The notes beneath the pieces are model-generated. The model was not told where the DNA came from, searched no databases, and saw only the letters and a list, made by a program, of their open reading frames with translations. A stretch of DNA of 64,000 bases from Pavona decussata. Taxonomy: Eukaryota. Shown piece after piece: positions 907-41,606 of the stretch. The stretch covers positions 2,604,001 to 2,668,000 of the forward strand of contig CDRNST010000188.1 in NCBI GenBank assembly GCA_977016875.1. The letters run 5' to 3'. Positions within the stretch are counted from its first letter, which is position 1. Each line of letters begins with the position of its first letter. The position numbers were made by a program, and so were the translations under genes.

Positions 907-963
<57 letters not shown>

Positions 964-4027: not shown

Positions 4028-4065
<38 letters not shown>

Positions 4066-9709: not shown

Positions 9710-9950
9710 AACATGGCTGGCCTCCATGTGTTTACCTTATTTGCATGCATTTGGCAATTTGACGCAAGTTTGCCAAATTCGTGACATTTGCCCAAATCGC
9801 CAAATCGGCCAACATGGCAGGCTTCCATGTGTTTAGCTAATTTGCATTTATTTGGGAATTTGACGAAATCTTGCCAAATTCGTCACCGTTATGACTGTGG
9901 CAAGATTTCGTCAAAATTGCCAAATTCGCCATTACCTGCATTTCTGGACA
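9710..9950. repeat. Tandem repeat of about 101 bp (2+ copies) rich in gccaaattcg subunits
   Basis: aacatggctggcctccatgtgttta at 9710 recurs as aacatggcaggcttccatgtgttta at 9811. Confidence 0.75.
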
Positions 9951-12841: not shown

Positions 12842-12877
12842 GTAAGCATCCAGTTGCCAAAATAATTACCTTATCAG

Positions 12878-13050
12878 TAGGCCATTTCCGAGATGCTTTG
12901 CACTTCATTATGAAAGCGAGGCAAAGTGCAAAGTTTTTATTGTGGAAATTAGTTTTCATTCACTTTCAAACAAAACTAATTTTCATATGAAAACTTTGCA
13001 CTTAGCCTCGCTTTCATAGTGAGGTTCACAGTAACTCGGAAATGGCCTAT
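12878..13050. mobile_element. Palindromic MITE (about 172 bp, TA-flanked)
   Basis: taggccatttccgag...ctcggaaatggccta folds back over its full length. A second copy lies at 56478-56651. Confidence 0.85.
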
Positions 13051-14666
13051 TCTGGTGATAAAGTTGTAACTCTGTAAGCCACACGGTAAGGTACAAAAGC
13101 AATACTTTTAACATGGCTGTAGTGTAGGATGCATTTTGAGCAGCTCGGTGTTAGTGAAGTGACCATCTGAGCAGATGTTTCTTGAATTAGGTTAGCGAAA
13201 GAGCGTCGTGACTGAAGGGTTTTCCGAAGGGGAATTTGTTCGTGTTGCTGCTCAGGGAAACTGTATTTTAGGACTGTGGTGACACTTCATCTCTTTGCCA
13301 CAATTTATAAACAAAACAGCTTTAGTGGAGAATCAAGGTTAACTTTCATTTCGGTCACATAGCGATTTGACATATAGTTTTTGAAGACTCGTTCTCCATC
13401 ATACCGGTATTGTTTTTTTTTTCTCCTGTGAAGTTTCTGCAGTGACTACGTACTGTTCCTGTGTTTACGGTTATAGTGATCACAAGTCCACGTTTTTTGT
13501 GCTTAAATAATTCTGACTTAAAAATTAAAAGGACTTCTGCAAAAACAAAATGTATTTGCTTTATCTATCCTGGCGAATTTCAAGGTTCAAGGCCGTGTTT
13601 TGGGGAGAATTTGCCTATCGGCTCTTGTGACTTCTATCCCGCGTCCGCAAAATTTCACGTGTTCAGACGTGAGCCCGTGTCTCGACTCGGGTACCGCGGT
13701 ATATACCATTGAGAATAGATATTTATGTAAGGCGCACAAAACTATCGTGACTGCTTGTTACGCCTTCATACGAAATGAAAGAAATGAGATAGACGATAAA
13801 TAAGTTCATCCAGTTCGGTGAGATTAATTAGCAGGGAAAGGAACAAGGCAAAAGCAGCAACTCGTGTGTAAGGTATAGTTTTATTGTTAATTTCGCTTTA
13901 GAAACCTCAGTATGTCGTGATTACTTACTACTTAACTCGTCTTCTGTAATTATGTAAAAAGGGATCGGTCTGACTTCATCTAAGGAGAACTGGCCTCCTG
14001 TAAAAGGTTTTGAATACAGCGTTTGACTAAAAACAGATTGAAACGGTGGTCACTCAACGGGGACTATTTATGACACAGTAAACCGACAGTAATTTGCATC
14101 GCGCTGAAACATCTTGTTATTGCGAAGTTTACAAGCTCAGTGAAAGCGAAAGTTGAAAATGCGGATAATTTCAACGCTAGTCTTTGATAAGATTTTCTTT
14201 AAACTGCCTCAAAACTCCAAAAGCCGAATTGAATCTTGATGGACAGGATTCTGTGTGAAGGAAGACGGTTCTGAACATTTACAGCAACAAAATAGATTTG
14301 ATTTATTGTCTATTCTAATCATGTCACGCAATCTAAACACACATTAAAATTCTGAGTTGCAACCACTACATGGGACCTTCGTGACAAAAACTCATAAACC
14401 AAATGTAGTAAACTAAATTGCTATCAACTATACCAGTTCTTTCACATTGAAAGTTTTCGTCACTTCACTTGTTTGAAGCAGAGTATGCAGTTTTAAAATT
14501 TGCCCTCTTTTCAGGCTTATGTGAATAAATTTGTCGGATGAGGTTGTTTATGAAGTCATTTCTGGTCGATGTAAAGCTTCTTCGCATCCACTTTAATTCA
14601 AAACGACAAGGGATTCCAGACCACAGGAGCCTATTTATAGGCCCGTTTCAAACACTGTTCCACTAA

Positions 14667-15249
14667 TGCGCCGAACCTGACCCAACTAATTCGCCAAACC
14701 TTGCAGAAAAGAAGTAAACAGTTTTCACCGAGTCGCATAATCAGGAATTCTGTAAAAATTATGAGCCTGGTCTTTTTTAGTTATCGCTATAAATAGCCAT
14801 ACAATAAGAGAAAATTAAACTTTATCACTGGGTGATTTTGCATGACTTTTTCTGAACATTTTTGTTTCGTTCCCCTCGCTCGCTCTCCTTCGCGTCTCTC
14901 GAGGGGCCTGGAACAGGCTATCTAAATTAAGCACACTGAAATCTTAGCGACTTGAAAAACAGAAGAAGAGTTTCGCGGGGATCAAGCGATGGTCACGTTT
15001 GGCATTATTTCACGGTTAAAACTTCAGGCTGAGGGATTTTGAGTCAATTGCAAGCCCGCAAAACAATGAGTAAGGCACATGACAGGAGCGGCGTATGAAT
15101 CACTTCCGCTCCGGTGTCGAATCAGATCGGTCGGGCAGACATTGTCGAACTCAACGACGTTTGCCGAAGAAAATTAAAACTGTCACACCATACTGATTCA
15201 GTCGTCGTTCGTTCCCGAACTTAGTTCACCAGTCAGGTTCGGCACATAA
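14667..15249. mobile_element. MITE-like element with terminal inverted repeats
   Basis: atgcgccgaacctgac ... gtcaggttcggcacat. Confidence 0.55.
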
Positions 15250-15354
15250 GATTGCAGCGGCGTCCCGGCGGATCAAACTTCTTATTCCCTTTGGTTCATT
15301 TTAAAGGGTTCAGTATGCCCCGGTTGAAATACTGTAATAATGAGTTGTGTGTTG

Positions 15355-15965
15355 GTGGTATCGAAAACGAACTGAGCACTCGAAAACGAAGACCGAAGCA
15401 CGAAGCACCCCAAAACTCGAAAACGAAGCACCCAAGGTCGAAAACGAAGCACCCTAGGTCGAAAACGAAGCACCTTAAAACTCGAAAACGAAGTACTCTA
15501 GGTCGAAAACGAAGCACCCTATTTTCAATCAATTACAATCACATCAACAGAGGCGACAAACCAAGTTTATGTTGATTGGATAGATAGATAGATTGTTGTT
15601 AAAGAACTAAAAAGCTTTTGCAGAAGAAAAATATCAACAAAAGGTAAAGCTTGACATGCTTTATTCACGTGGAAAGCAGGAAATGCCACTTTGAAGTGTT
15701 TACTTTTAATTCTGTCAGGGCTGCGGAAATTCATTTTCAACAACTCGCAGTTGAATAGTTTTGCGCAGCACTCTATCCGTTATCGCGCTTGATTCGTGAC
15801 TAAATTTCGACCCTGAATAAAACAAACAAAACCCTAACTGTGAGTCGGCCTTAAAAACTGAGTGCTTCGTTTTCGAGTTTAAGGGTGCTTCGTTTTCGAC
15901 TTAGGGTGCTTCGTTTTCGAGTTTTGGGGTGCTACGTGCTTCGGTCTTCGTTTTCGATACTACCG
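15355..15965. mobile_element. Foldback-type element with modular TIRs built from about 20-bp subrepeats
   Basis: The cgaaaacgaagcacc array at 15360-15520 is mirrored by a ggtgcttcgttttcg array at 15858-15965. Confidence 0.8.
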
Positions 15966-16389
15966 GCGTTGTGTGTTAGTGTGTTCATTGACCTTTGCAT
16001 TTCATTAAGAGAATTGAGATAAATTGCGTAGTGTTAGTCACTGAGAATTATTAAGTAAGCTTAAGCCTTGTTAGCCCGGGACTTCCTGCAATCGTCCAGA
16101 TTACCTTTCTAAATACATTTTCTAACTATTGCGATCGAAACTGCGTAAGATATCTCTCGTTTATGGAATAAATATGATGGCATATTTCAAGCCTGGTGAA
16201 TCAATGAGAATGATGTATTATTCTAGATACATCATTCTGTAATGATACATCATTCTCATTAATTCACCAGGCTTGAAATATACCAACACATTTATTTCAT
16301 ATACCACACGTTCAACATTCAAATCCTAGCAGTATGCAGGATATTTTTCCCATGAACCTAGTTTAATGGCATCAGCTCCCTTAGCTCTT

Positions 16390-16895
16390 AGTAAGTAAGT
16401 AAGTAATTTATTTAGTGTCAAATACACAGGGGGTGGTCTCCCAGTCCCCCGAGCCACAGGCTCATGATATAAGTGTTTGACAGTATAAAAAAAAAGATAA
16501 TAACTACTAATTAAATTAAAAAGTAACATCTAAATATAAATAAATAAAAATAAATCGGGTCAGAGGCAATTGCTGCATTGACAGCCGTTAAAATTTAACT
16601 TAGTTAAAAGTCTCCGAAAGGATGATGCATTAGGTGCGTTTTTTACAGCAGATGGCAACTGGTTCCAGATGTGTGAGATCATGTACGCATGTGAGCCATG
16701 AAGGAATCTACTATTGTATGAAGTTTGTACAACATTTAGACCATTGCTTCTAAGATTATATGGTGTAACTCGGGATTTGAATAAATTGGCTACATAGCCT
16801 GGACCATTCTCCTTGAAACATTTAAAAAATATCATCAAAGATTGTTCTATGCGTCTATGTTCCAATGTATTCATGTCTGCCATCCTAAGAATTGA
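16390..16895 (-). mobile_element. LINE (CR1/L2-group) 3' fragment with short tandem tail
   Basis: TLEHRR..IFFKC...PGYV..LF...YNLRS....IWNQLP is a typical ORF2 C-terminus, followed by a taaataaa(ttac)n tail. Confidence 0.8.
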
Positions 16896-16899
16896 TTCA

Positions 16900-17960
16900 T
16901 GCCTCTTTCTTCCACCCTACAATTTACGAATTGTCCCATGGTCCTTAATAAATTGTGATCGCCTTGATACGCTTTTATTCAATCCTATCGAGCGGCCTGA
17001 ATTATGCAATCCACTCTCTTGCTATGTTGACCCTGATTCAAATTTTGCTGCTCGTCCTCCATCTAGTAAATACGTTTTCGCGGAAGAACTCAATAAAGAA
17101 ACTGACACTGCAAATAACACAGCCAGCTCCATTATCCATTTAAATGCTCGCAGTTTGACCAGTTTGCTCTGAATAGTAAACGCAAACCATTCTCTGTTGT
17201 TGGTGTGTCGGAAACTTGGCTAAATGACGCCACTTCAGAGCTGGTAAACATCACTGGTTACAATTTTGTCTCTAGCCATCGTAATTCTAAATCCGGCGGA
17301 GGTGTCGGTATTTATTTACAAAATGACCTTGATTACAAACTTCGCCCTGAATGTAATTTCTCAAATCCTGAATTAATTGAATCACTTTTTGTGGAAATAA
17401 CTCAATAACTGTTCCCCAAGAGAAAAATATCATTGTCGGCTCAGTTTTCTTGACCACCGAATTATAAGGTAGCCTTATTTCTGGACAATTTAATGGAATT
17501 CTCTCTAATATATCCAAAGATAACAAACAATGCCACGTGATGGGTGATTTTAATTTAGATTTTCTTCAACCAATCGTCACTCGGCCACCAAGGAATTCGT
17601 CGATAGTTTATTTTTACACCCATTTATACCACTTATTTCGACGCGCAACACCTCTCACTCCGCGCTATATTCACAACCTGTTTTTCAAGAAATGTTTTAA
17701 GCGGCATTGTTATAAACGATTTATCTGACCACTTTCCGGTATTTACGTATTTTCGCGATGAAGATCTTCCACGTAGTAGTTTCTGAAGCGCATAATTATG
17801 GCACCAGAACAGCCAACCACTATCGATCGCATTCTTGTCGAAAAAATCTTAAGCAATTTACAGTCCTTTACCAAGGTCCCAAAATCTGGAACTCTCTCCC
17901 AATATCAATCACTTCTTCATCTATTTTTTTCACCTTTAATTTCACCTTTAATTTCTTCCA
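16900..17960 (+). mobile_element. Degenerate LINE: APE endonuclease joined to the ORF2 C-terminus
   Basis: HLNARSL, SETWL, GGGVGIY, MGDFN and SDHFPV are spread over broken frames, then HNYGTR..YQGPKIWNSLP. Confidence 0.85.
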
Positions 17961-18718
17961 ACCGAAGCTTTGTAAGTTCCGTCATTGTGGGTTATGAAGC
18001 CAGTGCATGGCAATTGAACTTCTTTGTTATATGTTTTTGTTAGCATTTTGACCTTGATCGGCACAAACCACATGATAGATTTTGAAATGTGTTGGAGCAA
18101 CTGACCAATAGAAACGTGGCTGTTAAAATATTCAGGTGTATTGTGAACGTTAAAACAAAGGATTATGCACGGTCGCGGTCGCCTTCCAACATAAATTGCA
18201 GCTCCATTGTTTTCATGGCAAGCTGGTTGCCAATCAGTAACAACAATGGATTTTGTGAGGTTTTGACTTTCAGGTAGCCTCTTGCCAGGAATTGCCTGGA
18301 AATAATCCATTTACCCATTTTTGATAATTGTGGTGTAATTCCTCTGTTTTTCAAACCGTATTTACAAGAACACCAAGTACCACTTGTTTGTTACCTTGAA
18401 TTACTTTTACCTTCCTTCTATAACTTAGAAAACTAACTAGTGTAATTTAATTCAAAGGAATGATTGTCGAACGAAAACCTATTGTGTATCAGTACGTAAG
18501 GTGGCTTCGACGGCTGTAAACACTTTCCATTGCGTATAATTTATGACAGTAGGCGTGGTCTTAAATCCAGCCCTTCTTGTTGGATAGAAACCATTTGTTG
18601 AGAGAGTGGAGAAAGCTCCTTCGCAACGACTTTTTAACTTAGATTTTCATCCGCTTTTATTAAGTTTTTATATTGCTCTCGTAGCGGTGTTATACCAATT
18701 GTTTCACATAGTATAACA

Positions 18719-18928
18719 NNNNNNNNNNNNNNNNNNNNNNNNNNNNNNNNNNNNNNNNNNNNNNNNNNNNNNNNNNNNNNNNNNNNNNNNNNNNNNNNNN
18801 NNNNNNNNNNNNNNNNNNNNNNNNNNNNNNNNNNNNNNNNNNNNNNNNNNNNNNNNNNNNNNNNNNNNNNNNNNNNNNNNNNNNNNNNNNNNNNNNNNNN
18901 NNNNNNNNNNNNNNNNNNNNNNNNNNNN
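18719..18928. other. Assembly gap (210 N)
   Basis: Run of N. Confidence 1.
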
Positions 18929-19246
18929 CTTCTTATCCCTTTGTAAACTTTTGTTTTGTTCTCACTTTTAAGACCTAAAGAAATTTAGAAGACCGGCTTT
19001 GCCAACGCAGTATTTACACTTCAAACGCAATGAAATCTAGCGTAAAAAAGCTGCGTAGTACGTTTCGGCGAAAATATGCTTTGTATTGCAAATAAGGTTC
19101 AAAATAATACAACTCCAACGCTGCTTCTAGCAATCCGATCGTTGAGAAACTGCTCAATGTCCACCAAACAATCCCCTCTATTTTAGACCAACTGATTTTC
19201 TTTTCTTTTCAGATTTTCAAGGACTCTACAAATCAGGCACACGACA

Positions 19247-22200
19247 ATGGCTCTTTCACATATCAGCGATGTTAGTATTTCCCAAGATGAAGTCAAATAT
19301 CTTGAGTCAGAAGGAAGGGATTACTGCCTTTGTCACGGCATGGTTTATAAGGATTCCCAGGGAAATGTTCAACATATTCCCTTCACTCTGTATCCTTCAC
19401 CGTTTCCACAGAAGCTTTTTGCAGCTGCGAAAGAAGTGCAGATGGATTATAACCTTTTAGTTCACAAAGTCAGCCAAGATTACGACTTTACCAAGAATGC
19501 GCTGTCAAGGTATCAACAGTACTATGTGATTGGGGGAGAGGGTAACTGTACTTTGTGATTCGGGGAGGGGGTAACTTTTACTATGTGATTGGAGGATGGG
19601 GTGGGGGAGTATAGAGGGGTCCACACCATGCTTCACAGAACATAGAATAATCATTTCACATAAATCATTCGCAACATTTCTCTGCGTAGAGACGTCACAT
19701 TTTTCAGCATAAAAAATAATTTAAAGACCCATGTTCACCCAATAGGCCTTTCGCGCGTTTGTTATTATCTACAAACGCTTCTATTGCTCAGTATTTCGAA
19801 CTGATTGGTTTACCAAAATATTCACGCTGGGGTGAAAATCCTGGCGTATTCAAAATATAACAGACCAGGCAAATCGGACTGATTGATTTTGCTCCAGTCG
19901 CTCCGATTTATTTAAATCTCTGCGCCAACAAAATATGTTTACTCCCCAAAGCGCTGGAGTTATCCGTAGTTCTTTGCTTAAAGTCTCGGCGAACGAAAGT
20001 CGATGGTCTGCGTTCCTTTGATCGATGCGACGGAGCACTCGAACAGTTAAAGCCCTCAATATTGTATAGTTTTAGTACGTAAATTTGATCCTATTACTGT
20101 ACAATCTTAAGGGTACTTATTGGTCATTATAGAAGTTGGCATAAAAAGGAATTAACAGTGTTTGGCGCGATGGTAGCTCATTTAATGTCGCTTTCCAAAT
20201 AGCGCTGATCCGGTCTATCGCACTACAGGTATCGATCATGACGTTATCTCTACCTTTGGTGGTATACCAATGATATGATATTCTTAATTCGACCGTTTGT
20301 GAACCTGCAGCTTACTTGGCAGATGAGTATTTTAATTCAGTTGCCTTTGCCACGAGGAACAAACGAAGGAAACCTTCCTGGAAAACCATTCAGTTTATTA
20401 AATATCTGTTCGCTACTCTATTTACATCAATCGGGCGAATAAAATCAAATCGAACTGATCAAACTTACGTGCAAAGGTCAGATTATCGTAGAAATCAGGA
20501 ACATCGCTGCAACAAATGCATGGAATGAGACAACAAATCCTCCCGCTTCTTTTTTTCAGAGTGACAGCTATACGAAGAGTCAGAGTATATGCTTTCCCGA
20601 TAACAAAAAATGTACATTTCTCAACTGTGAAATGTCAGTTAAAAGCGACTAAAACGTCTTGTTTTGCCCGCGCAAATAAAAAATTTAATTCAAACTAACA
20701 ATAATCTGAAATGAAAGAATAATTTCCTACAAGATTACGAATTGAAAAATTATCTTCAAGATGGCCACAGAGTAAACGGAGCGGGACGCCTTGTTGGACA
20801 TCCGATTTTCCTTTCCTTACGAATGACCCTTCGTAGAAAATATCCTTAGAAATGAAATGAGAGGATGTTACACAAAGCTTGATGTCACGAAAAAAAAGGC
20901 GCTACTCGAGGAAATAAGCTCAATGGACGTTGATTATTTTCGCTATCTGGTGCTCGCTGGCGATTTTCGGATTTTTCGTCTGTGTCCGAAAATCAGCTCG
21001 GCGCGCAATGGCGCGTAATCGGTGAACATGGTTCTTCCTTACGCCAAAAGGAACTACTCAGAATAGTAAGAACTAAACGGGATGAGTAGTTACAAAGTTA
21101 TCATGCTTTATCTTCGATTATCTAGGTTGTAACAAACGAGAAAGAAAAACAAGAAACAAACAAGTAGATAAGTAAAGAAATAATAATTAAGATAGGAAAT
21201 GAAAAAAAGAAAAAAAAAAGGAAAAAGTACCTGATAATGAGTGAATCAATATTTGTACAAAGGTGTATTAGAAGCCAAAAGGAAATTAGCACAATAAGAG
21301 TTGTGGCATAGGTATTTCCCCAGATAACCGGGCCATAGGTTAGGAAGGGATAAACTCTATAGCTGAGTTAGTATATCACAAGTAACAAGGTGTCTAACTC
21401 TAGAAATAATGCCAATACTATAAACAAAATTCTATTTTTAGACGACATTACGGCTTTATATTGACGGCTACTTAGGAGAAAATATATTCCGGAGCCCAAT
21501 ACAGAATATATTTTCTCCAACGTAAGAATAATAGCATGAACTGTTGAATGATTCGAGCGAAATCCAAACTGTTTGTCAAAGAAAATAGATGATTTCTCAA
21601 AATACTTAATAAAGCTGTTGTTCATTAGCCTGCTCTCAAGAATATTATCAGTACGTCTAGATAACAATGAGATGGGACGATATATGGATACAAGAATTTC
21701 TTCTAGTTTCAACCTTTTTTATTCTTTCACTTCTTCAAATTAACCACATTGTGTTTGTTTTTCTTTGTTCTCACCATAGTACAATTGCCGCTGATCCCTT
21801 CACATCAAAACTCTTTGATATTTATGACAAGGTTTGGAAACAAGGCAATGCTCAGGTAGGTGGTCTTTACTTTGTGTGTCAGTTCATCGTGTCTACTCCT
21901 TTCTCATATCAGTTCTGCTTTCATTCGGTCTGTCTTGAATCCCACAACCCAAGGAAGTATTAGCGATGTAATCTGAAGATTTAACCACTGTTTCAGTTGG
22001 GCAGTAGGGAGATTACCAAGACTGATATCCTGAAAGGATCGTGGCCTTGAACTAGAAGGAAGTTATCAGACAATCGTTCTTCTCAGTTATATATAGTTTT
22101 AAACTGAGCACTCCGCTGTGTTCTAATTGTACATCGCACCTAACTTCTGGTTTGAACCAGGGTGGTTCCCGGGATTCAATCAAGTCAGGGCCATTTTTAA

Positions 22201-25200
22201 TTGCGACAATAAACTCAGATATGGATCAGTAATCCGACGTCTGATGTAGGATTGTTGCTAACAAATAGGGAACGCTAGAAGATCTATTGCAGGAAGCGGT
22301 TAAAGACAAGTAATACCGGCCATTCGAAGTTGTTTTATGGGACTAGTATTAACTCAGGAAACGAAGGTTTCGTTGAAAACAGTACAATGCATGATAAGTG
22401 TCTCAGTTGCCGCAGCGATTTAGAACGCCTTGAGAACAGGAATTGTTTATTAATAGTGAAGGCATTGTATGATGTAACCCATAGCGCGGGTAAACCCTTT
22501 AAAATCGGTTATGGTTTCAGATGCTTTTATCCCAAGGCAGTAAATTTGAAGGTAGGCAATCCAGAGAAAACATTAAAGGTGTGTATATTGCACTCCATTT
22601 TTAAGGCTTATACTGAACAAACATTTCGTACGTGACCTTTCTCTGATTTTCTTTCAGCCTATCTCACTGGGCCTCTTTCGTTCAGATTATTTGATTGACA
22701 CAGCCGGTGGGTTGCGTCCTGAATGTTGCACTAGTTCTGCGGAAAAAGATGGTCCAATCTACATCAAGCAGGTTGAAATGAACACCATATCTATTGGTGG
22801 TATTACGTTCTCCTGTCTTGTACCCGGCATGCACAGGTAGCTTTGAGAGTTTTCAAGGTTTTCTGGTTGTGACCATATCTAACTGAACTCAGGAGAACAC
22901 AACAGGAAAAATCCAAAACACAAACGGCGTGCCCTTTTAGTTATCAAAAACAGTGTTGTTCAATAAAACAATCCTAGCAATATCCGCAGCCACAAGATTA
23001 TCGGATTTTGTATGGTGTGCCACAGGACATTCTGTAAAAATTGGAAGGTTTATGGGCGGCAATGAACATTCAAATTCTTTGTAATGTCCTGTATTTGAAC
23101 GTCTGGCATTTGAAAATTTCTCTGGAAAACGTTCCAAAAAAGACGCGTTAACTGAAAAAAAAAAACTCCACTTCCACTTTGGAAGTAAGAAATTCATCGC
23201 TTTTCACTGTCAAAAAATAAGGGAAATTTAGTTGGGAACTCTGAAATCGCGCTGGCGATGTTCAATACTGACATGTAAATTTCAAAACTCCGTTGATATT
23301 TCAGGAATACTGGTCACAAGTCATGTAGATTGACTGTAACTGTTTCTTGTATTGCAATCTAGATATCTCTTAAAGTTGACCGGCCGACAAGAAAGCAAGG
23401 TATGTTTGCGTAAATGTATCTTGTTGTCGTTCTTTAAAAGCCAGGGACTAAAGATAAAATAAATAAACAGATAAATAAAAAATTACATATACCGAACTTA
23501 TGGTTCAGTTTGCATCTTAGGTTCCGCCAAACCATGCATTAGATGAGGCAGCTGACGGGCTTATTAGAGCCTGGGAACTGTATGGATCAGAAAGGTTGTT
23601 ATGGTCCACTTGTCCTTGTTGCTCCATTGTTTGATTTTCTTGCTTTTTTAACAACTAACATGCGCTTACGTCTATCCATTTCAGTGCTGTCATTATGTTT
23701 GTTGTTGAGCCTGACGAAATAAATATCTTTGACCAAAAGATGCTGGAATATCGTGTTAAAGAAAGGTAATCAGATAACTGAGCGATTCCCTGCTTATTTT
23801 CTGTTGGCTTAAACAACAATCATCTGATTTTAAGCAAAATTTCAGTACAATCTGATCGGCTATGGCAAACAGGCAGAAAAAGAAAATCATTCCAATCTCT
23901 TGGGTTATTCATGCCGCCTCGTTAATTTAGTAACGTTGATTTTTTTTCCTTTTATTTATTTCATTTCACTTTACTTCCTTCATTTCCATAATGGTTCCTG
24001 AAACGTTTGTCTGTAAAGAAGAGAGAGGGAGAGGTTCATTCCAGTTTGTCACTGTTCGCTGATTAAATTGTTTCAGGAGGAATGCTTTTCCTACTCAACG
24101 ATGCTTCTGGACACTCACGCCAAAGATTCCTCTACAAATCGTGTAACATGTTTACCTTAGCCTAGCCTCCCACGCTGTCGTTTTTAGGGGACTCGTATGG
24201 GGAGGAAGTAATACGAGTCCCCTAAAAACGATTGCGTGAGAGGCTACTATTAGCCTTGAGGAAATAATTAAAAGTTTTATGATTTGATTATGTGCCGTTC
24301 AGTTCCGAATTATTTGGGAATCGTTTTCTACATTTTTAAACACATTTTTCTATTCTGGCTCTGGAATGAGTCTAAGTTAACAGAAAAACGTTATAGAAAG
24401 AGGCGGGTTTATTATTATATTGTTTTTCAGTTGGCTCGACTTTCTTTGTTCTATTCGGGGGAATATATTTTTAATTAATATTTCCTGGCAGTCTGAGAAG
24501 GTGGTGGCGGCTTTGATAGTTGATAATAACAGCAGTACAATTCAATGCATATTCCTCTCGACTTAGTTCGCTACGAAGGCCCTTCAATAAATAAAAACGA
24601 ATAGTAATAAATGGACTTTCGATGTGTTTATTTAATACATTTCTAATGTTTTTTTTTTTTTGCAGAAACTCTACCGTGAGAGTGATCAGGCGAAGCCTTA
24701 CTGACATTTTTAACAACAGTGAAAAAAACGATAAGTGTCTTTTTGTGTAAGTTGTTCTTCGTTCTTTGTTAAGTCTCGCCCTTAAGTTTTGTCCCCTTTT
24801 TATGTTTGTTCTTCGTTGACAGGCATAAGGTGTAGCAAACAAAAGATTATCCTTAACATTCCAACAAATCACATTTTAACTTTATACATGCATGTTTGCA
24901 GTAGAAGAGCGCGCACGAGCTGAAAAAATGCTCACAAAATTGGCGACTGTCTGTGACATTAATCCCCCCTCCCCTCCTTTGTACCTTGGATATCTTGTAC
25001 GCATTTGCGTACATTATTCTTTCATTAATTTAACTTACTTTGAATAACTTGACAAGGTGGCTCAACTCTCGTAGGATTGAAACTTGTGGTGCACCTGGCC
25101 TCGGGAGTGAATCCACTGCTTGTTTAGTTTTGTTTGTTTGTTTCTTGTTGTTGCTGTTGCACTTGTTTTTTGTTTTGTTTTGTTTGTTTTTTGTTAAATT

Positions 25201-28200
25201 TTTTTTTTTTTGCAAGGAGGGAGGGGGAAGCGCTGCGCTGGACATCATGCTCCTAGATTCGAACTTCGAACGGTTTCCCTTTTTTCAGTAACAATGGGCT
25301 ATTTTCTTGGGATCTCCTATGCTAGTATATAGCCTAATCTGAATATGTAATCAAGAGTTTCTTTCACAAAGGTAAACTCTCAATAATTTACGATGCATAT
25401 ATCTGATGACTAATTTGCCGTGCAAACTGATCACACCAATATATCTATCTAAAAATTCATTTTTCATGCAAACTTTTTCGTCAACAGAGATGGTCTGGAA
25501 GTTGCTGTGGCCTACTTTCGAGCAGGCTTTGCGCCAAAACACTTCCCAACGGAAAAGGTAGGTCAGATGAGCATGACTAGAAATGATTCTCTTTTTGCCA
25601 TAAACACAAATTATTTTTCTCTATGCAGTTTTCAGTGGTGGTTCATCTAATTGCCATTATGTAATAAGCTGAATTCTACACGTATTTTGATTGGTACTTA
25701 CTTATGATCTATTGGAGGACAGACGCATAGATGACGTCACCATACAAAACTTTTGCTTCTTTATTATATAAAACAAATAGATTCCATGTTGCCGTGAGTC
25801 TGTTCAGTAATAGATCACAGAAGGCGTCAAAATGTGGTAAAAACATCAGTGACACACGAGGCGCAATTTTTGTGTTCTTACATGTATTTGTTTTAGGTAT
25901 GTTTACATTTAAGTTCACGACAAGCGTGCCAACTATGGACTCATAAAATCGCAAAATCGCAATTTTTTTCTTTCAAATGTCGTTTAGGAAAGTTTTGACA
26001 CTTTTCCTTCTGCAATAGGAATGGTCAGCTCGTTTAACACTAGAGTTATCCCGTTGCATTAAATGCCCAACAGTGGCGCATCAATTGGTGGGAACAAAGA
26101 AGATGCAGCAAGTGTTAGCTGGTCCTGGAATTTTGGAAAGGTATGACTAAATAAACGAATTCTGTCCAGCAAGCAAGCAATTACGTTTTTGTACTACATT
26201 TCCGTGAAATTCCCAAGGATACATTTATGGAAGCTGATGAAGGAATAGGCCATTTCACAATTGTGTGCTAAGTGACCTGGCCTTGGATTGTAAGCGAGGC
26301 TGGCGGTGACCTTGTTTTGATACAAACCTCACTACTTTTCATATGTTAAACTAGTTAGCATAAAAACGGCGTGATCTACACGTGGAAACCGGTGTGTTTG
26401 TATCAAAACAAAGTCACGTGCAGTCTTGTTTACAATCCAAGGCCAGGTCACTTAGCACACAACTGTAAAATGGGCTATTTTATATCATTCATGAATAGTT
26501 TTCTTTTGTATTTGTAGCGGTTTGAACTCAATTGCTTAGTAGCCAGTATCTTTGTATAAACCAGGTGATATTTCATTTTCCAGGTTCCTTCCCGACAAAG
26601 ATTCAGTGGACAGAGTTAGAAAAACTTTTACTGGACTGTATACTCTCGACCTGGTAATTATGGCAATAACTAGTGAGAGCGGTTTTCAATTGTAAGGCAA
26701 AAGTAATTAACGTACGTTCCCTTTGGTTTAAATTAAAGCTTTGCTTTTTTGGCTAAAATAAGCTAAAAACAAAAACACAAAAAATTCGCGCTACTTTCTA
26801 AAGCAAGGGGAGGCAAAACCAATCGTCCAATCCTGACTTACTCGCGCTCAATTCCCCTCACTTGACGCTGGCTACGTGTATTCCTTCGAGTTCTGATTGG
26901 TTCATTGCAATGTTTGCATCTTTTGCGATTGAACAGAGTTAGAGAGTTAGTATTTCTTTTTTTTTTTTTTTTCGGTCTTCGTTTCACGCCACTCAATTGT
27001 AAATCGCTCGAACTCTGGTGAAGTTTTAAAGTGGCTGGATAGAAATATATAACGTCAAGCAGTTTCTTGTCTTAGGAAACACACCGGCAAAATTACGCGA
27101 TCAGCCCTGTACCTCTTCCAATCTTTTTAGATCTTCAATTTTCTGAATTGATCGGCAGATCGAAAAGGAGTCCAACTTACCACCCTGTAGACCCAGAATC
27201 CCCCACTAGAGTAGTATATGTAAATGTTTACGCCCCTGGATGAATACCTTAGAGCGTGTACCTTTAACAGGTTGAACTTCAAAATGTAGGCCGAGGACGC
27301 TTTTGCTACATTTATACATTTTCATGGGAGTTCCCCTCCAAGGGATTTTCTTATCAATTTATACGGTCCTTGCTGTCAACAGCCACTTTCTTGACTCAAG
27401 CGACCAGCACACTACAGAAAGGTTGACATGGAGATGATGACTTTTCTACGCTTCAGAGGGAAGCTTCGTGTAAAACAAGGTCAGAGACTGTGGTCTCTTT
27501 CGCGAGATGCCCAATGATACCGTCCAAGAGGGATGATAAACTTGCCACGAGCGACACCTCATACTTTAAAGAGTTGTTGTTGGCTTTCTAGGGGAAGGGG
27601 AAGGAAGGGGGGGGGGGGGAGGGGTGGTTTCAATCCCTGCCCCAGCCCCCAAAAAAAGAAAATTGGTTACACGTCCAGATTGAAAGAAAACGCACACGGT
27701 CCCGGCCTGTGATGTTGGCAAGAAGCGCGAAGCGAAAATAACGAAGGTCTCTCTGGAAAAAAATCAACGCGGAAAATGTCTCGCACACAACAGGCACAAC
27801 AATGCTATTTACTCGGTCGTTCCTCTCGTAATACATTCATTTTTTAAGACCCCTTGTGAAATGGAGAACTCCGAGGACCGAAATTACACAGTACTTCATT
27901 AAAGTCGAGGACAATATCACTCAAAAACATCACAAAAACCACACAAGCTCACTAAAAGTGATCAAAATTGAACGAAAAACACCAGACGACTGCGTCTTGC
28001 ACACCTGCTGGTTGTCCCCTTGGCTAGCTTTTGATCCAGTCTCGATCACTCCCTTTCTTTAGTACTTGCTTGATGGTATGTAGATCATGAAATTAGTGAC
28101 GATCACTGAGAAAATGCCGTGAAATAATCTTAATCCTGTTGATTGAAGGGGCCAGAAGGAGACCACAACATGAAATGCTGCCTTAAAAGGGTAGACAAAT

Positions 28201-29589
28201 GCGTGCTGAAGCCTCAGAGAGAAGGCGGAGGTAAGAATCATCTTTAGAGAGATTTAGCATCGCGTTTACGTGAAACGACAAGCATCATCTTGCCGTTTCA
28301 CGTTTCATGTAAAATAGCGTGAACCTTTTGACTTTAGATGTAATATATCAAACACGAGGAAGAGTGTTTCATCCGATATCCAAACACCGAGAAGTAGGTT
28401 GGAAAAACGAGGCGCAGCCGAGTTTTTTTAACCAACTTCAAGGTGTTTGGAAATAGGAGGAAACACTCTTTCTAGTGTTTGATATAGCTTTTCAAACTAT
28501 TAATAATTCTTGGAGAAATTCGAAGCAAAAGTTCACCAAATTTTATGATGATTAAGATCACATTTCCAAACCTCCTTCACGGTAGTGATTTGCCTTGTTT
28601 TGTCTTAACTCCAGAATCTTATTTAGGCAAAAAGTCAACGAACATTTTTATTTGTAATTTTTTATAGTAGCGCTTTTTACTGCTGTGTTTTCTGCTTGCA
28701 CACTTTACATTTTTAGTTTTTACAGGACCCCTTTGATAACAATACTGTTTGTACTGATGGGTTTATCATGCAAGAGTATTACATTTAGCTGTCGAAACAT
28801 TGAAAGCCGCGATTGAACAGACGAGTATAAACATCACAACCTCCGGCAAGAATTTTGATATTTTTATCACAGTGAGTTCAAAATTCCTTCAGTCATTGAA
28901 ATCTACGTTCTATTTACTTTTAAATCACGTATGTAGTTAAGAGATTCGTTCGATGAAACGCGAGAAATAAATCTTTTTTCATGCAAGAGTCTTACATTTA
29001 GCTGTCAAAACCGCGATTGAACAGACGAGTATAAACATCACAACCTTGGCACGAGTTTTGATATTTTTATCCCACTGAGTTCAAATCCCTTTGGTCATTG
29101 AAATCTACATTTAGCTTTCTAATCACGCATGTAGCCAAGAGATTCTTTAAAAAAAAGGCGAGAAACAAATCTTAGCTTTTATATGCAAGAGTGTTACATT
29201 ATATTTGAATTGAAGCCGCGATTGAACAGACGAGTATAAAGATCACAACTGCGGCACGAACATTTTGATATTTTTGTCACAGTGACTTTAAAATCTCTTC
29301 GGACATTCAAATCTACATTCTATTAGCTTTCAAATCACGTGTATTTCTTAGAGATTCGTTGGAAGTAACGCGAGAAAAAAATTCTTTTATGGAAGTGTAT
29401 GATTGTGATTAGCCGTTGTGAAATTAAAAACGGTGAAAGACACGTAACGCGCGAGGTAACATTATCCGTGAGAAAATCGATACCGCCTAAAAATAACTTC
29501 AGAGGGATTACGATGGGAATAGGGCCTATATGGGGGATTACCTCTCTTACCTTCATCCTCTCTTGGTTTATCCTGTTTAAATATTCGTC

Positions 29590-29645
<56 letters not shown>

Positions 29646-30060
29646 CTTGGATTAGAACATTGCTTTCTTTTGAGATTTTAAAGTCGGTACACACATGCGT
29701 ACGAGGCTCCAGGACACCTTTTCACAAAATTCCATTTGGGGATTTCATTGATGACTGCCGCTTAAACGCTAGCCAAGCGTGTCTCCGCTAATTTTAGAAA
29801 GTGAATGATGGCGTGACGTTGTAAATTAGTATTTTAGGATCTTTTTAACAACTTTTTTATTTCATCAAAATTTTAGTCTTACTATTGTTAAAAAATTGTG
29901 CTTGAAAATAGCTCTGTTGTACTTGGAAATAGTCGCTTTTTTTTTAATCGAAATGAATTTTAAATATTGAATTGTAAATAGGTTTTAATAGCTCTTTTTT
30001 TCTACTTTTAACTTGTAAATATCAATTTTGCTTGGAATATTATAATAAAGAAAGATTATA

Positions 30061-30102
<42 letters not shown>

Positions 30103-33100
30103 GAATTTTTAATGAGTTTGAGAATTAATTTTGAAAGTTTCGATGTAGTGAGTTCATGAAGAAAAGTGCGGTAAGGAGTGACTTATGAAGGACTTTTAAA
30201 CATGAAACTTAATTTGCCCTAGTATGACTTGCCGGAAAAATTATTGTTGTACTTGTTTTCAACAATAACTACTTATTTGTATAAGAAAAAAAAGGAAGAA
30301 ATACTTACGTAGTTGTCACGTAGATAGAAAACGCGAAATAGCCTGTTTTCACGCAGAAACGGCAACTGGCAACCAGCAAACGCGTAAAATAGCGGGAATA
30401 TCGTGGTCACGTGGTCATTTTTGCCGTTCGCGTTTCACGTATACGCGATCCTAAATCTCTGTATTCCCTAAGTTGCTCTCGATATTTCAATGCTCTATCG
30501 TTTTATACCCTTCTGGCAGCCTTTGCGAAGGTTTTGTAGGATACCCAACTACTACTAAAGAAAGGAATAGAACCTGCTAGGACTGGGCAGTACATATGGG
30601 TTAGAGACTGTTGAGAGTGTTTTGTTTACAAATACACGCACGCGCTGACCGTACAATGAACGAGGAATTTTCAATACTGCACGAGGCCTTCTTAGGCCGA
30701 GTGCAGTATTGAAAATTTCGAGTTCATTGTACAGTCAGCAAGTGCGTGTATTTGTAAACAAAACACGAACTAACAGTCTCTAACCCTTTTAATATACGAT
30801 CTGAGTTCACTGTACGCGATACACGTTAAAGGGAAAACATAAAACGATAACAATAATTATGACAAGACAATTTTAATAAATAAAAAATCCGAAAAATAAG
30901 TACAGGTTTATTTCAATGAAAAACAAATTACAATTCACAAATACCCTGTACACAAGCTTAGTTATGTTCAATAGCTATAAAAATTGGAAACTACAGTCGG
31001 CGAGAAGCCTGTTGACTGTTTAAAGCGATTGTCAATCCCTTTTCTTTGTGACGTTATACGTCTACGCAAAATTACAGTTTTCAAATTTTGCATCAGTTCC
31101 CAAAGTCGACAAATTTGGGCGAACTTGTAGTAGTTGCGAACATGTTTTGTACGTTATTTCATTTCTATTGCTGTGCTCTATCTGCTGTGTTGGTTTTGTC
31201 GCCAATACCGTCGAAGCAACTGGTGCCGCTAAAATTTCAGAACATTGTTTTTGTTGTTGTAGCGTTTGTCGTTCACAGTACACTTTTACGCTTCCCTCGT
31301 TTCTATGGCCGGACACTTGCATTATACGATGGACAGGAACTCCTGCTCTTAATCTAACAATGTCACTGAAGTCGCTCTTATACCATGGTTTGGATAAACT
31401 TGGCTTAGGTTTGCTACTATTGATATTTCTTTCATCATGTTTCCTAAACTGTTCACGCCGAGCGGCGCTCTGTCAAACCAGATTTCATCGCTAGCACAGA
31501 ATTTTCTTTTCGGCCTCTGAAACAGTGCCTTTTCACCTGGATTAAGAACCTGAATTAACTTTTTTAGGAACTGAACTCGACAGTTGGCTTCACCAGTAGA
31601 AAACATTTTAGGATCCGCTTCGTCGGCCTTGTCACTGAGCCCGCCAGGATGATTTTTAGTTTTTTATTGCTCGGCCATTTCAACATATTCAACTTCACTT
31701 GCGTCTTCCTTGGAAACAAAACTATTTTTTGTCAATCTTCGTTGGTTTTCTCGACCTCTTCCGAGAAATACAGGTTTATATTAAACCAATTCACCCTTAG
31801 TAACGAAAAAGGCGAATCGCCAGCGAAAACACCGCTTTCGATTCGAAGCATTTTTGTATGTCCTCGGGCTGAATGCTAACATGATGTTTGACTTTAGACG
31901 TACCACTTTCCCTTTCGTATTCAAGGACTTGTTTGCCGTTTTGAAAATCGGATATGTTATAATAGAAAATGTCTTTCCAACTGTTTCTGAAGTCAAGTAA
32001 CGGTTAATTCCCGCTCTTATTGCTACATGAGCTGAACGGCTGTAGTCCTTTCCTTCGTCTTGTTTTAGTTCTTGGTAAAACTTACTCAGTCGCTCGGCCA
32101 ATATTACTGCACTCAAGTTCTCCAACTCTCCAGACCGATATCTCAGTTGCAGCCATTCTAGATAGTCGCGAAAAGAAAAACAGTAATTTTACTACCAATT
32201 CATTCAGCTTTTTAAGGTTCTTTTTTAGAAGCTTACGCTTCAGAAAGCCCGAATGGCGAAATCACCTGTTTTTCGCAAACGACAAATAAGTTTTACAGAA
32301 AAGCACAGACAAAATTTCAGTTCTTTTGTTTCACTTTTACCTTTAAAAATGGGAACACTCCAGGCTGTTTGTCTCTTGGTGTTCGTTGAAATCGAGTCAC
32401 TGATGATTTGAGGGATTTCCTGTTCTCCAACCTGTGCAAACCTCGAAGCCATTTGCAATAACGCACGATTTTCATGAGTTATCGCCAACACTGCACTTTC
32501 TGAATGTGGTTTCGTGACGTAAATGAAAATCACGTGATCGATTTTAACCAATGGGCGCGCGCGTATTTTGATAGAGAACTCAGATCGTATAGTAATACAT
32601 GATAACGTGCGGATATTTTATAAAAACAATAAATTGGCATGCACACATTTTTTTATAATTCCAAATAGCAAATCTACTAAATTGATACAAATACGAGTTC
32701 CTCGCGATTTACACCTCAACAACTGTAACAAAAATATCAAACAGTAAATCTACTAAAGGATGTGCGGTACAAGTATGAGCTCCTCGCGGTTTGCACCTCA
32801 GAATAGCAATAAAATTAACTTCAAACAGTAAATCTACTGGGGGATACAAGCATGAGTTCCTCGCGATTTGCACGTCAGAATTACAATAACATTAACTTCA
32901 AACAGTAATTCACTGAATGATTTCTAGTATGAGCTCTTCGTGATTGGAAACTACAGTAGCTCCAATAATTTCAAACATTATATCTACTGAATGGATACAA
33001 TTATGAGTTCTTCGCCGTGGTTGTACCTCTCTCCTACTTAAGAAAGCCTAATTTTGCATAATCGAAACTTATATTTTTTGTAGTTTTAACTTGAACCATA

Positions 33101-34513
33101 AAATAAATCCTATATTGGCCAAGCTTGTTCAGGCTTGTAATCATGTGTATCATTCTTGCAAGTCAAACTGTTTCAGAGAACGTTAAAGAAGCCTGAACTA
33201 CATCGTTTCTCACACTCAAGCGTTAGGAAGTAACATCATTTTAATTTCTCAGGTTTTTTCGGACTAATTAAAATCTGGGCACGAGATAGCTCATCCTCTC
33301 TTGATCTGGGTCATTAGATAATGAAACTTCAAAGTTTTAATTGGCTCAGCGGCCATATGATATCAGCCATCACACCATGCCAGATTTTTCTTGCAAAATG
33401 ACATTCCGTATAATTAATTGAAAAAAGTTATTTTACTCGCGGAATATTTTTTACTGCAGGTAATAACATTTATGGGGAAGACATTCGTCACACGTTACTT
33501 GGCAACCCCGAGAGCAGATCACAGTACATACTAATGGATCGTATCCAGCCCGAAATCTCCAAAAATTTTATGGTGCGTCAAGAACTCACAAATATCCAAT
33601 CCAGTGACGTCATTCCTGAGCTTGGAATTGTGGGTATTTTTATCAGGTAAGCCTGCCGGTGTGGCAGGAAATGGGTTTTTAAGCGATAAGCCCTGTGGGA
33701 AACAGGTTATTTTGTCTTCTCGAATCTCGCTGCTTCCTGCGGGGCCAGTAATCCCAACTCAAATATGAATGAACAACAACAACAACAACAACATGCGTGT
33801 TGTCGTGGCATTGAATAAAACAGAAAAAACCTCGCTGCTTCGTTTGGTTAGCCCAAATTTTAAAGTTTAATGATCTAACCATTTGCGAGTCTGAAGTTTA
33901 AGTTGTTTTTCCCGTAGGGGGTTCCCCTTGGGAGTTTTGTTCTCACTGTTGAATCCGAAACAAAAACGAATATTTAAGTTTTTTTCCATGTTCTTTGGGG
34001 TTTCTAAAAACGTGCTATTCGTGTCCATTGAATTCCGATTTAACACAAAATAAGCGTACGGGTTCTTTAGCATTTTCGTTTTCAACGATCAAGCTTCCTT
34101 CAGAACACTCGCACGCGCAGTTTGTAGGTTTCCGGATGTCAGCAATGTCACGTTTCATGGTGACTTACGTTTCTGGTTGGTTTGTCGTTACTAACTCAAA
34201 TGGCTTATTTTGCACAATGTTTGCACTTCTTTTAGAAAGGTGATCATGATTATGAAAACTTTTATCAATACAGGAGCACCAGTTGCAATTGTAGAGAGCA
34301 AAATCGCGACCTTTTTCCAATGGAGTGAACATACATCCCATGATCTCTCCTTTTCTTTAATATTCTAAGAGTACATCTTTGATTTTCAGCCGTGGAGATG
34401 AAGTGCTGCTGAACAAAGAGGGAGGTTACCTAGTGAGGACAAAGACAACTGAGCATGCGGACGGAGGAGTGTTTGCTGGTAGAGCTGCTTTCGACAGTCC
34501 ATATATGGTATGA
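19247..34513 (+). CDS. GSS: Glutathione synthetase-like protein, copy B (complete, 13 coding exons, 481 aa)
   Basis: Exons 19247-19509, 21780-21855, 22658-22836, 23363-23399, 23521-23594, 23685-23765, 24666-24746, 25488-25557, 26019-26140, 26584-26653, 28149-28230, 33460-33646 and 34390-34513 sum to 1446 nt and are open throughout. Contains [42 protein letters not shown] and [11 protein letters not shown]. Confidence 0.95.
21380..21700 (-). mobile_element. LINE reverse-transcriptase fragment in GSS-B intron 1
   Basis: YRPISLLS...[15 protein letters not shown]. Confidence 0.8.
24162..24246. mobile_element. Short palindromic MITE
   Basis: tagcctcccacgc..cgtttttaggggactcgtat / atacgagtcccctaaaaacg..gcgtgagaggcta. 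Confidence 0.75.
26245..26478. mobile_element. Palindromic MITE (about 230 bp)
   Basis: ataggccatttcacaattgtgtgctaagtgacctggccttggattgtaa ... ttacaatccaaggccaggtcacttagcacacaactgtaaaatgggctat. A remnant lies near 47820-47910. Confidence 0.85.
28344..30121. mobile_element. Non-autonomous hairpin element, interrupted; architecture like the Crypton-type element
   Basis: Hairpin 28344-28486 with loop gaggcgcagccgag. The adjacent tcaaactattaataattc (28492-28509) is inverted relative to gaatttttaatgagtttga (30103-30121). Confidence 0.6.
28768..29392. repeat. Tandem repeat, 3 x about 205 bp
   Basis: atgcaagagt.ttacatt at 28768, 28981 and 29183, each followed by ccgcgattgaacagacgagtataaa. Confidence 0.9.
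30598..32591 (-). mobile_element. Crypton-type (DUF3504/ZMYM-KCTD1-like) tyrosine-recombinase DNA transposon, frameshifted
   Basis: Fragments [17 protein letters not shown] (ATG 32452), [36 protein letters not shown]...PLGVNSL..MMKEIS...NHGIRAT (HxxR) and [12 protein letters not shown] (catalytic H and Y). A 16-bp inverted repeat at 30793-30808/32576-32591 and a terminal hairpin at 30598-30786. Confidence 0.85.
32665..33015. repeat. Diverged minisatellite of about 75 bp (about 5 copies)
   Basis: aaatctact...atgagttcctcgcgatttgcac recurs. Confidence 0.75.
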
Positions 34514-38751: not shown

Positions 38752-39330
38752 CTATGCATTATTGAAGGTAGTTCCAAGTTCCTTTTGAAGTTGTAGACAT
38801 TTCGATCTGTAGTAATCTCTTTGCTTGAGAACCTTTTCTAGCTCCACTTTTGTAGTAGATACCTCCTGCTCCAAGGTCACATTTTCTTCCGCCATTTTAG
38901 CTTTTTTCTCGGTGCATTTCAATCGACATTTTAAAGCATATTTGCGATTCTTGAGAATTCGTCTCCTTTTCTTGATCTTTTCAGCTTGTGATTTTGAAAT
39001 GCCTTGAATATGGTTGTTGAGCTCTTTAGTGGTCATCTTTTCCAGTTTCTTGTCGCTCAAAGCAGGAAAACATTCTGAATCAGAGAGATGGCAAGTCTTG
39101 TTATGACATCGTTTGGACGCTGACTTTCGCTTTGGTTTGCTTCCGGCTTTTATGCGCGACAGTACATTTTTCTTGAATTTACCAAGGTCTTTCAGAGTCT
39201 CCGAGCCTTTAACATTTTTTTCGTCAAACAGTCGCAAGGTGTTATCGAACGACAGCGAAGGACTAGTATGTACTGGGAAGTTGAGAGGTAGATCCTCTTC
39301 TGTAGAGAAAATATAATCATCACACGCCAT
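38752..39330 (-). CDS. Maf-family bZIP transcription factor 1 (about 192 aa, single coding exon)
   Basis: LSDKKLEKMTTKELN..GISK.....IKKRRRILKNRKYALKCR is a Maf extended-homology region plus basic region with the diagnostic Tyr, followed by a leucine zipper. The likely start is MACDD at 39330; the ORF stays open to 39462. Confidence 0.88.
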   Translation of the reverse strand: MACDDYIFSTEEDLPLNFPVHTSPSLSFDNTLRLFDEKNVKGSETLKDLGKFKKNVLSRIKAGSKPKRKSASKRCHNKTCHLSDSECFPALSDKKLEKMTTKELNNHIQGISKSQAEKIKKRRRILKNRKYALKCRLKCTEKKAKMAEENVTLEQEVSTTKVELEKVLKQRDYYRSKCLQLQKELGTTFNNA

Positions 39331-39360
39331 ATCTGAGAACCTTGCAGATGGTAATGTTTC

Positions 39361-39501
39361 GAAAGTGAAAGCTTTTCTTTGAATAATTAGGTCAAAGATC
39401 GCGGAGCTTTTGAAAAGGGGGAACCCCCACACTTTGAATTGAATGGATCCGTATGACGTCATTTTTCAAGATAAACGAGCCGCTGTTGTGTCTGACGTTA
39501 T
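39361..39501. promoter_or_regulatory. Candidate IRF, kB and CRE motif cluster upstream of Maf gene 1
   Basis: GAAAGTGAAAG at 39361-39371, GGGGGAACCCCC at 39417-39428, TGACGTCA at 39454-39461 and TGACGTTA near 39493. Confidence 0.45.
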
Positions 39502-41478: not shown

Positions 41479-41606
41479 ACCTGTTTCGAGGAAAAGTAAC
41501 AAAGTAAAGCACCTTATAACACGCGTAGGTGTCGGAGAGTAGAAGAAGTGAATGTCTTTGATGGAAAACAATCCAAATTGCATTTAATCCGAGCTTAGCA
41601 ATGCAA

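Follow-up and report, generated by a model that had tools for sequence, protein, structure and literature searches.

A conserved, divergent glutathione synthetase lineage of stony corals and its candidate gamma-glutamyl-peptide ligase in Pavona decussata

Introduction

The question raised by this locus is whether a stony coral that also has a canonical glutathione synthetase (GSS) keeps a second, altered one for a product other than glutathione (GSH). The stretch of DNA analyzed, called the window here, comprises 64,000 nucleotides of contig CDRNST010000188.1 (C188) from Pavona decussata. A GSS homologue, named copy B in this study, occupies positions 19247-34513 of its forward strand. The original prediction, made from the letters of this DNA, had described the gene as a GSS-fold ligase with an intact ATP and metal site but rewired substrate loops, possibly a peptide ligase that does not make GSH. 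Copy B is a member of the eukaryotic GSS family by its domains, its catalytic residues and, through a proxy, its fold. It belongs to a divergent GSS lineage that is conserved in reef-building and deep-sea stony corals, is apparently undescribed, and is maintained by selection. GSS is commonly regarded as a housekeeping gene present once per genome, and almost all eukaryotes are stated to have only one (Lilley et al. 2018, PMC5919673). In each of the characterized exceptions, namely legume homoglutathione synthetase (hGS), rice OsGS2, and the nematode effectors, new thiol chemistry came to light. As for the rewired ligase that had been proposed, its duplication, its divergence, and its maintenance by selection were borne out, but the step from residues to product was weaker than had been stated.

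Gene Model of Copy B

Copy B consists of 13 exons encoding 481 amino acids, with zero internal stops. The ATG start lies at 19247 and the stop codon ends at 34513, which is exactly the range first assigned to the gene. All 12 introns are GT-AG in the splice-aware junction model. The exon pieces were first seen as open reading frame (ORF) fragments and were then placed by tblastn with P0009, a full-length relative of 486 amino acids that was recovered by searching with the exon 1 peptide of copy B. In the junction search, frame continuity and zero stops were required, and the junction with the best local alignment was chosen. The joined proteins of copy B and of the three other copies described below (A, C, and D) were used for local alignment, trees, and dN/dS. 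The database, family, fold, and cluster searches were performed exon by exon, or on the relatives P0009 and P0152. The features of copy B are as follows, in window positions.

19247-19509, forward strand: exon 1; PF03917 match with E 6.9e-15 at C188:2623286-2623516
21780-21855, forward strand: exon 2; AG/GT borders, 88% identity to P0009 residues 89-113
22658-22836, forward strand: exon 3; PF03917 match with E 2.9e-8; R125 in FRSDY (22676-22690), Mg ligands E144/N146, and the rewired loop (22775-22810)
23363-23399, forward strand: exon 4, from the splice-aware model
23521-23594, forward strand: exon 5, from the splice-aware model
23685-23765, forward strand: exon 6; PF03199 match; gamma-Glu ligands E214, N216, and Q220 in EINIFDQ (23716-23736), all kept
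24666-24746, forward strand: exon 7, from the splice-aware model
25488-25557, forward strand: exon 8; S-loop FRAGFAP (25516-25536), with R267 kept and D268A and Y270F changed
26019-26140, forward strand: exon 9; GTKK with K305 (26091-26102); PF03199 match
26584-26653, forward strand: exon 10, from the splice-aware model
28149-28230, forward strand: exon 11; ends in KPQREGGG, the first part of the G-loop
28231-33459: intron 11; 5229 nucleotides, against 799 in copy A
33460-33646, forward strand: exon 12; NNIYG (end of the G-loop), ILMDRI, and PELG with E425 (33615-33626)
34390-34513, forward strand: exon 13; VRTK with R450 and K452 (34433-34444), A-loop GGVFAG (34463-34480), and stop

In the genome-wide scan, the PF03917 matches to copy B exons had E values from 7e-15 to 4e-4, so that the assignment is far beyond chance. 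The architecture is that of Pfam GSH_synth_ATP (PF03917) with an inserted GSH_synthase domain (PF03199), and all copy B exon matches were above the cut-off. The full-length relative P0152 scored 377.9 bits for PF03917 and 115.5 bits for PF03199. The same two-domain architecture is found in canonical GSS, both human (2HGS) and coral (copy D). The exon 3 peptide alone gave zero matches against the PDB, being too short for such a search.

GSS Loci in the Genome

The whole 602-Mb assembly was scanned in six frames with PF03917 and PF03199. Both Pfam scans agreed on only four GSS loci, copies A, B, C, and D. A separate canonical GSS had been recommended as a target for a genome search, and it was found as copy D on contig C163; A and B are therefore not the sole GSS genes. 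The loci other than copy B are listed here.

C188:2601484-2612418, reverse strand: copy A, intact, 487 amino acids, head-to-head with copy B and 89% identical to it
Window 313-8418, reverse strand: copy A exons 1-10, with exons 11-13 before the window start (C188:2601484-2603580)
Window 8156-8418, 7681-7756, 6010-6203, 4497-4533, and 4310-4383, reverse strand: copy A exons 1-5
Window 4105-4185, 3168-3251, 2610-2679, 670-791, and 313-382, reverse strand: copy A exons 6-10
C188:2576158-2588999: copy C, a broken tandem GSS-like copy upstream of the window
C163:528027-540409: copy D, an intact canonical-type GSS of 480 amino acids

Copy D showed 81% identity to the GSS of Porites harrisoni and about 51% to copy B. 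Its loop, INTIASSFGGLS, is of the canonical type, and its S-loop is YFRNGYDP. The 13-exon structure and the intron phases of copy D are the same as those of copy B. The phases 2,0,2,0,2,2,2,0,2,0,1,2 are common to all four copies and the exon lengths are nearly equal, which indicates paralogues from DNA-level duplication and not from retroposition. Judged from these sequences, A and B would have descended from GSS by DNA-level duplication, and each is predicted to be a cytosolic ATP-grasp ligase beside the canonical-type D.

Copy C carries a TGA at C188:2586153-2586155 in exon 3, at the place where A has the GGT codon of G151, and a 2-nucleotide indel puts it out of frame at the usual donor site of exon 8. 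The A-loop of copy C is GGILAG, in which 462 is Leu, as it is in legume hGS. These lesions indicate that the array does shed copies.

Selection on Copies A and B

Between A and B, dN was 0.056, dS was 0.34, and omega was 0.16. In the three-way comparison, the branch omega values were about 0.22 for A, 0.13 for B, and 0.32 for C. The branch of copy C was 3-4 times longer, and its omega suggests a recent inactivation. Three intron pairs of A and B were compared (introns 4, 5, and 12); two were unalignable and one had a 35-nucleotide match only. The diverged introns together with the low omega indicate that the conservation of the exons comes from selection and not from a recent origin. Purifying selection on both sequences thus suggests that copies A and B are in use.

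The relatives in other corals were full-length ORFs on contigs of 1.7-2.0 kb in run assemblies. Such contigs are too short for a gene with 12 introns and are likely mRNAs, so these relatives are probably transcripts.

Residues Retained and Replaced

In the reaction of GSS, the Cys carboxylate of gamma-glutamylcysteine (gamma-EC) is phosphorylated and glycine is then coupled to it. R125 holds the Cys carboxylate. The glutamyl end is bound by E214, N216, Q220, R267, and Y270, and the Cys side is lined by S149, S151, and F152. Molecular dynamics simulations showed that S151 and F152 contribute to gamma-EC binding (PMC6297838). Glycine is bound in the A-loop, by V461 and A462 (PMC6297838).

For the placement of these positions, HMMER alignments to human GSS (2HGS) and potato GSS (5OES) were used, and they were ungapped through the 144-164 loop. 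Human numbering in our own alignments was transferred by way of the 474-amino-acid Bufo GSS (P0209), with the expected residue at 15 of 15 landmarks. A two-residue deletion in the 149-155 loop, which appeared in a tblastn high-scoring segment pair, was rejected, since the HMMER and MAFFT alignments were ungapped with both flanks anchored.

The Mg and ATP ligands and the Arg at the catalytic position (E144, N146, K305, K364, E368, N373, E425, R450, and K452) were all present in A and B, in agreement with the claim that the ATP and metal residues are kept. The gamma-Glu side chains E214, N216, Q220, R267, and Y270, together with R125, were kept in A and across the divergent clade described below. 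Y270F is private to copy B, and Tyr is found in A and all other clade members. Altogether, 117 of the 131 near-invariant canonical columns (89%) were kept, including every Mg/ATP ligand, R125, R450, and K452.

The substrate loops gave a different picture. The motifs TISIGG, RAGFAP, and GGVFAG reported for copy B were confirmed in their places, the last at exactly 34463-34480. Copy A likewise carries TISLGG (exon 6010-6203, reverse strand), as reported, along with RAGYDP and GGVFAG. Compared with human GSS, copy B keeps S149 and has Ile for A150, Gly for S151, Gly for F152, Ile for G153, Thr for G154, and Phe for L155. It further has Ala for D268, Phe for Y270, and Phe for A462, and keeps A463. 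The canonical gamma-EC loop [SA]-x-S151-F152-G-G-L is thus absent from A and B, which read S-I/L-G-G-I-T-F. The small pair at 462/463 is also absent, with Phe462 and Ala463 in the A-loop, but the pair is not strictly diagnostic (PMC5919673). In the main subclade of the divergent clade, S151G, F152G, and L155F were 100% fixed and G153I was 91% fixed. A462F occurred in 9 of the 11 members, the rest having Tyr or Ser. There were 25 clade-diagnostic replacements, including L86T, G187E, R288L, A291C, A354C, P358V, and H447Y.

In canonical cnidarian and bilaterian GSS, the loop is S-F-G-(G)-L. For residues 150-155, canonical GSS has [AS]SFGGL, whereas the divergent clade has [LI]GGI[TS]F. Position 462 is Ala, Ser, or Cys in canonical GSS and Phe in A and B. 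The A-loop GGVAAG, against which copy B had been compared, is not the cnidarian norm: it is GGVCSG or GGVSSG in canonical GSS of corals and GGVASG in that of sea anemones. Other canonical-type animal GSS carry V-A, S-A, or N-A at 462/463. The change from RDGYMP to RAGFAP had been counted among the substrate-contact changes. It is present in copy B, but Ala, Ser, Thr, or Asn is common at 268 in ordinary GSS, which makes D268A uninformative, and Y270F is found in B only.

The Ala-Ala pair had also been taken to set acceptor specificity. In legume hGS, the 462/463 pair does set acceptor choice, with Leu-Pro leading to beta-Ala preference (PMC3783977). Mutants of S. pombe GSH2 at 462/463 gained the use of Ser or beta-Ala (PMC3473041), and rice OsGS2 makes gamma-Glu-Cys-Ser (PMC6508825). 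However, clade 2 of the nematode enzymes prefers glycine without the pair (PMC5919673).

Canonical scleractinian GSS also showed R367L in the G-loop (KPQLEGGG), at a position where Arg is retained in sea anemones and in the divergent clade. Together with the varied 462/463 residues of canonical coral GSS (copy D and P0168-P0183), this indicates that the housekeeping copy has drifted as well at supposedly conserved sites.

Divergent Clade in Stony Corals

Relatives were collected by a word-indexed search with P0009. About 25 clusters had 57-83% identity to P0009, and a second tier at about 48% consisted of the ordinary GSS of corals, sea anemones, and octocorals. The named sources of the first tier were Oculina patagonica, Porites lutea, Pocillopora damicornis, Orbicella faveolata, and Desmophyllum pertusum. 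The database labels of these named proteins were only 'glutathione synthetase-like' or hypothetical, and no description of a coral GSS paralogue was found in literature searches. P0011, a protein of 1765 amino acids with 14 stretches matched to exon 1, was discarded as a bacterial cadherin-repeat protein with a spurious repeat match.

In the maximum-likelihood tree, the divergent proteins formed one clade of 19 rows (support 100/100) with a stem of 0.65 substitutions per site, on a long branch separate from canonical GSS. The named members of this clade were stony corals only. Copies A, B, and C formed a species-specific trio inside it (96/98), and copy D fell inside the canonical scleractinian group, adjoining Montipora and Acropora. 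The substitutions are accordingly not general in cnidarian GSS but mark the divergent clade, so far in stony corals only. With a canonical copy D present and the substitutions not cnidarian-wide, the scenario of duplication followed by divergence is real. No members from outside Scleractinia were seen among the relatives retrieved, which is weak evidence of their absence.

In the free tree, the divergent clade fell outside the canonical GSS of Actiniaria + Scleractinia (97/93). In the approximately unbiased (AU) test, a scleractinian-only duplication was not rejected (p = 0.078), so that the duplication is dated only to the base of stony corals or earlier.

A second subclade, from Oculina patagonica (P0160 and P0170) and Pocillopora damicornis (P0161 and P0163), is not represented in this genome. 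In its members the GGV of the A-loop is lost (EVISLHG), and K452R and GGGNL are present. The gene model of P0160 has a C-terminal CTHRC1_C domain (PF25815, E 1.5e-26) and may be a fused gene model.

Altered loops were also seen in other animals. Branchiostoma P0189 and P0197 have G152 + F155, and P0189 reads GGVYVG (Y462). In the teleost 'GSS-like' proteins P0187, P0205, P0226, P0232, P0246, P0247, and P0262, the 149-155 loop is rewired, with GGF in several, and 462/463 is altered; the dragonet protein P0187 reads GGVFAG. These amphioxus and teleost paralogues indicate that extra rewired GSS genes are more widespread than the single-copy view implies.

Predicted Fold

The fold was modeled by proxy on P0152, which is 85% identical to copy B and has the loop ALGGISF and the A-loop GGVFAG, using AF2 with a 54-row alignment. 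The model had a pLDDT of 91.6 and a pTM of 0.91, and the variable insert before the EMNT strand was the only disordered stretch. In Foldseek, human GSS 2HGS was the top match (TM 0.91/0.94, rmsd 2.0 Å), with about 40% identity to P0152. It was followed by soybean hGS, potato GSS, and the nematode GS-like effectors. The TM values of the P0152 model against soybean hGS (3KAL) were 0.88-0.92. The GSS fold of copy B is accordingly a modeled one, predicted through P0152.

Possible Activity of Copies A and B

As read from sequence, A and B keep intact all that is required to bind ATP, to form an acyl phosphate, and to recognize the gamma-glutamyl head group, and the parts rebuilt are the two walls facing the second residue and the acceptor. 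In the divergent clade, purifying selection sets in after a long stem branch. These features are consistent with A and B being active gamma-glutamyl-peptide ligases whose preference has moved away from gamma-EC + Gly, a proposal that we regard as evenly poised between right and wrong. Such enzymes would convert a gamma-glutamyl dipeptide to an acyl phosphate at its C-terminal carboxylate and would then couple an amino acid there. The rebuilt walls at the second residue and the acceptor would shift the preference from gamma-Glu-Cys + Gly, and the product would be a glutathione analogue of the form gamma-Glu-X-Y.

A further step is more tentative. Stony corals might hold a dedicated ancient enzyme for an undescribed gamma-glutamyl tripeptide made beside GSH, one whose acceptor is not Gly and/or whose middle residue is not Cys; we find this conceivable, with the chances leaning slightly to the negative. 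If it is true, a coral-specific small thiol or peptide would be added to redox, detoxification, or signaling chemistry. The loop changes of amphioxus and teleosts (G152 + F155, or F/Y462) would then represent recurrent alternative specificity in animals. Furthermore, if a different peptide is made, coral oxidative-stress and bleaching studies of 'GSH' or 'GSS expression' may conflate two pathways.

Several points weigh against a changed preference. The two loop serines contact Cys via the backbone and small residues are tolerated there, and nematode clade-2 GSS still prefers glycine despite a non-conserved pair (PMC5919673). In human GSS, Y270F is mild, with 48% of kcat kept, and D268A keeps about 62-65% of the activity (PMC6297838). 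Seemingly ordinary GSS proteins already vary at 462, where A, S, C, V, and N all occur. In addition, F152G, L155F, and A462F could compensate for one another and leave the pocket as it was, and the long retention of two copies could equally come from differing regulation and not from chemistry.

A and B may still be true GSH synthetases, kept beside D through regulation, tissue, life stage, kinetics, or allostery, with their loops compensated. This explanation is a serious one, which we place a little under an even chance. The retained gamma-Glu side-chain ligands, R125, R450, and the entire ATP site agree with it, as do the 89% of near-invariant columns retained and the C-S, S-S, or A-S at 462/463 already present among canonical cnidarian GSS. 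The activities of human Y270F and D268A (PMC6297838) and the glycine preference of nematode clade 2 without the pair (PMC5919673) point the same way, and rice has three GS homologues, all of them GSH-forming (PMC6508825). However, four adjacent near-invariant substrate-loop residues were replaced and then frozen clade-wide, a bulky Phe/Tyr stands on the glycine-binding loop, and the stem before constraint resumes is very long. Moreover, the sister subclade 2 (two Oculina proteins and Pocillopora) is without GGV and has K452R, which indicates a family drifting from the canonical site. If GSH is still made, the lineage would be a natural experiment on how far the loops for gamma-EC and glycine tolerate rebuilding.

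Another explanation is that A and B use a donor other than a gamma-glutamyl peptide, as proposed for the nematode clade-3 effectors, and we consider it very unlikely. Neofunctionalization has a precedent in the same fold (PMC5919673), and 5OEU and 5OET were among the PDB matches. However, the nematode effectors replaced all six Glu-coordinating side chains (PMC5919673), whereas E214, N216, Q220, and R267 are kept here, and Y270 is kept in the clade outside B. In addition, the N-terminus of A and B is hydrophilic, and it is not extended in comparison with D or the full-length relatives. The intact gamma-Glu-binding side chains make a radically different donor unlikely. Finally, the broken tandem copy C, with its TGA, 2-nucleotide indel, and 3-4 times longer branch, might suggest that A and B are dead or decaying duplicates too, pseudoenzymes or incipient pseudogenes without ligase function, but this is highly improbable in view of frames open over 13 exons with canonical splice sites, dN/dS of 0.13-0.22 while the introns diverged beyond alignment, conservation of all catalytic and ATP/Mg residues, and full-length orthologous proteins conserved across distant coral genera.

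Comparison with Known Systems

Legume hGS (soybean, PDB 3KAJ/3KAL) and rice OsGS2, which forms hydroxymethyl-GSH, are likewise GSS duplicates beside a canonical copy. The plant analogue synthetases keep the gamma-EC site and are altered at 462/463 (PMC3783977, PMC6508825). Soybean hGS (3KAL) also resembles the P0152 model in fold, as given above. In contrast, legume hGS has Leu-Pro at 462/463, while A and B have Phe-Ala, and Leu-Ala occurs only in the broken copy C. The coral clade rebuilds the 150-155 loop, which hGS does not, and its origin is independent of plant hGS, within Anthozoa.

The cyst-nematode GS-like effectors (Globodera pallida clades 2-3; 5OEU, 5OEV, and 5OET) are also a lineage-specific tandem expansion in an animal. 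As in the coral, their ATP site and catalytic Arg are conserved and their substrate pocket is changed (PMC5919673). The nematode clade-3 proteins, however, are secreted and have all gamma-Glu side chains replaced, whereas the coral proteins have a hydrophilic N-terminus collinear with that of D and keep the pocket. The nematode expansion comprises more than 50 genes, compared with two intact genes and one broken in the coral. On its sequence features, copy B is neither an hGS nor like the secreted nematode effectors.

Intron 11 and Neighboring Features

The G-loop KPQREGGG/NN (28209-33467) is split by intron 11 of copy B. This intron is enlarged by an inserted mobile-element-like stretch, and the following were observed in it.

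31048-31494, forward strand: ORF
31781-32125, reverse strand: ORF with a weak QRICH1-like match
29335-29791: poly-Ile ORF pair of the (ATT)n type

Upstream of copy B, a run of 210 N lies at 18719-18928, about 320 nucleotides before the ATG, in the intergenic region between A and B (8419-19246). The promoter region of copy B is therefore not fully readable.

Downstream of copy B, at a distance of 4-7 kb, there are two tandem single-ORF bZIP_Maf (PF03131) genes, and their adjacency may be chance. In bilaterians, antioxidant-response genes are driven by Maf/CNC bZIP factors, and genes of GSH synthesis are among them.

38752-39462, reverse strand: bZIP_Maf gene, 236 amino acids, E 4.8e-16
40909-41583, reverse strand: bZIP_Maf gene, 224 amino acids, E 7.9e-19

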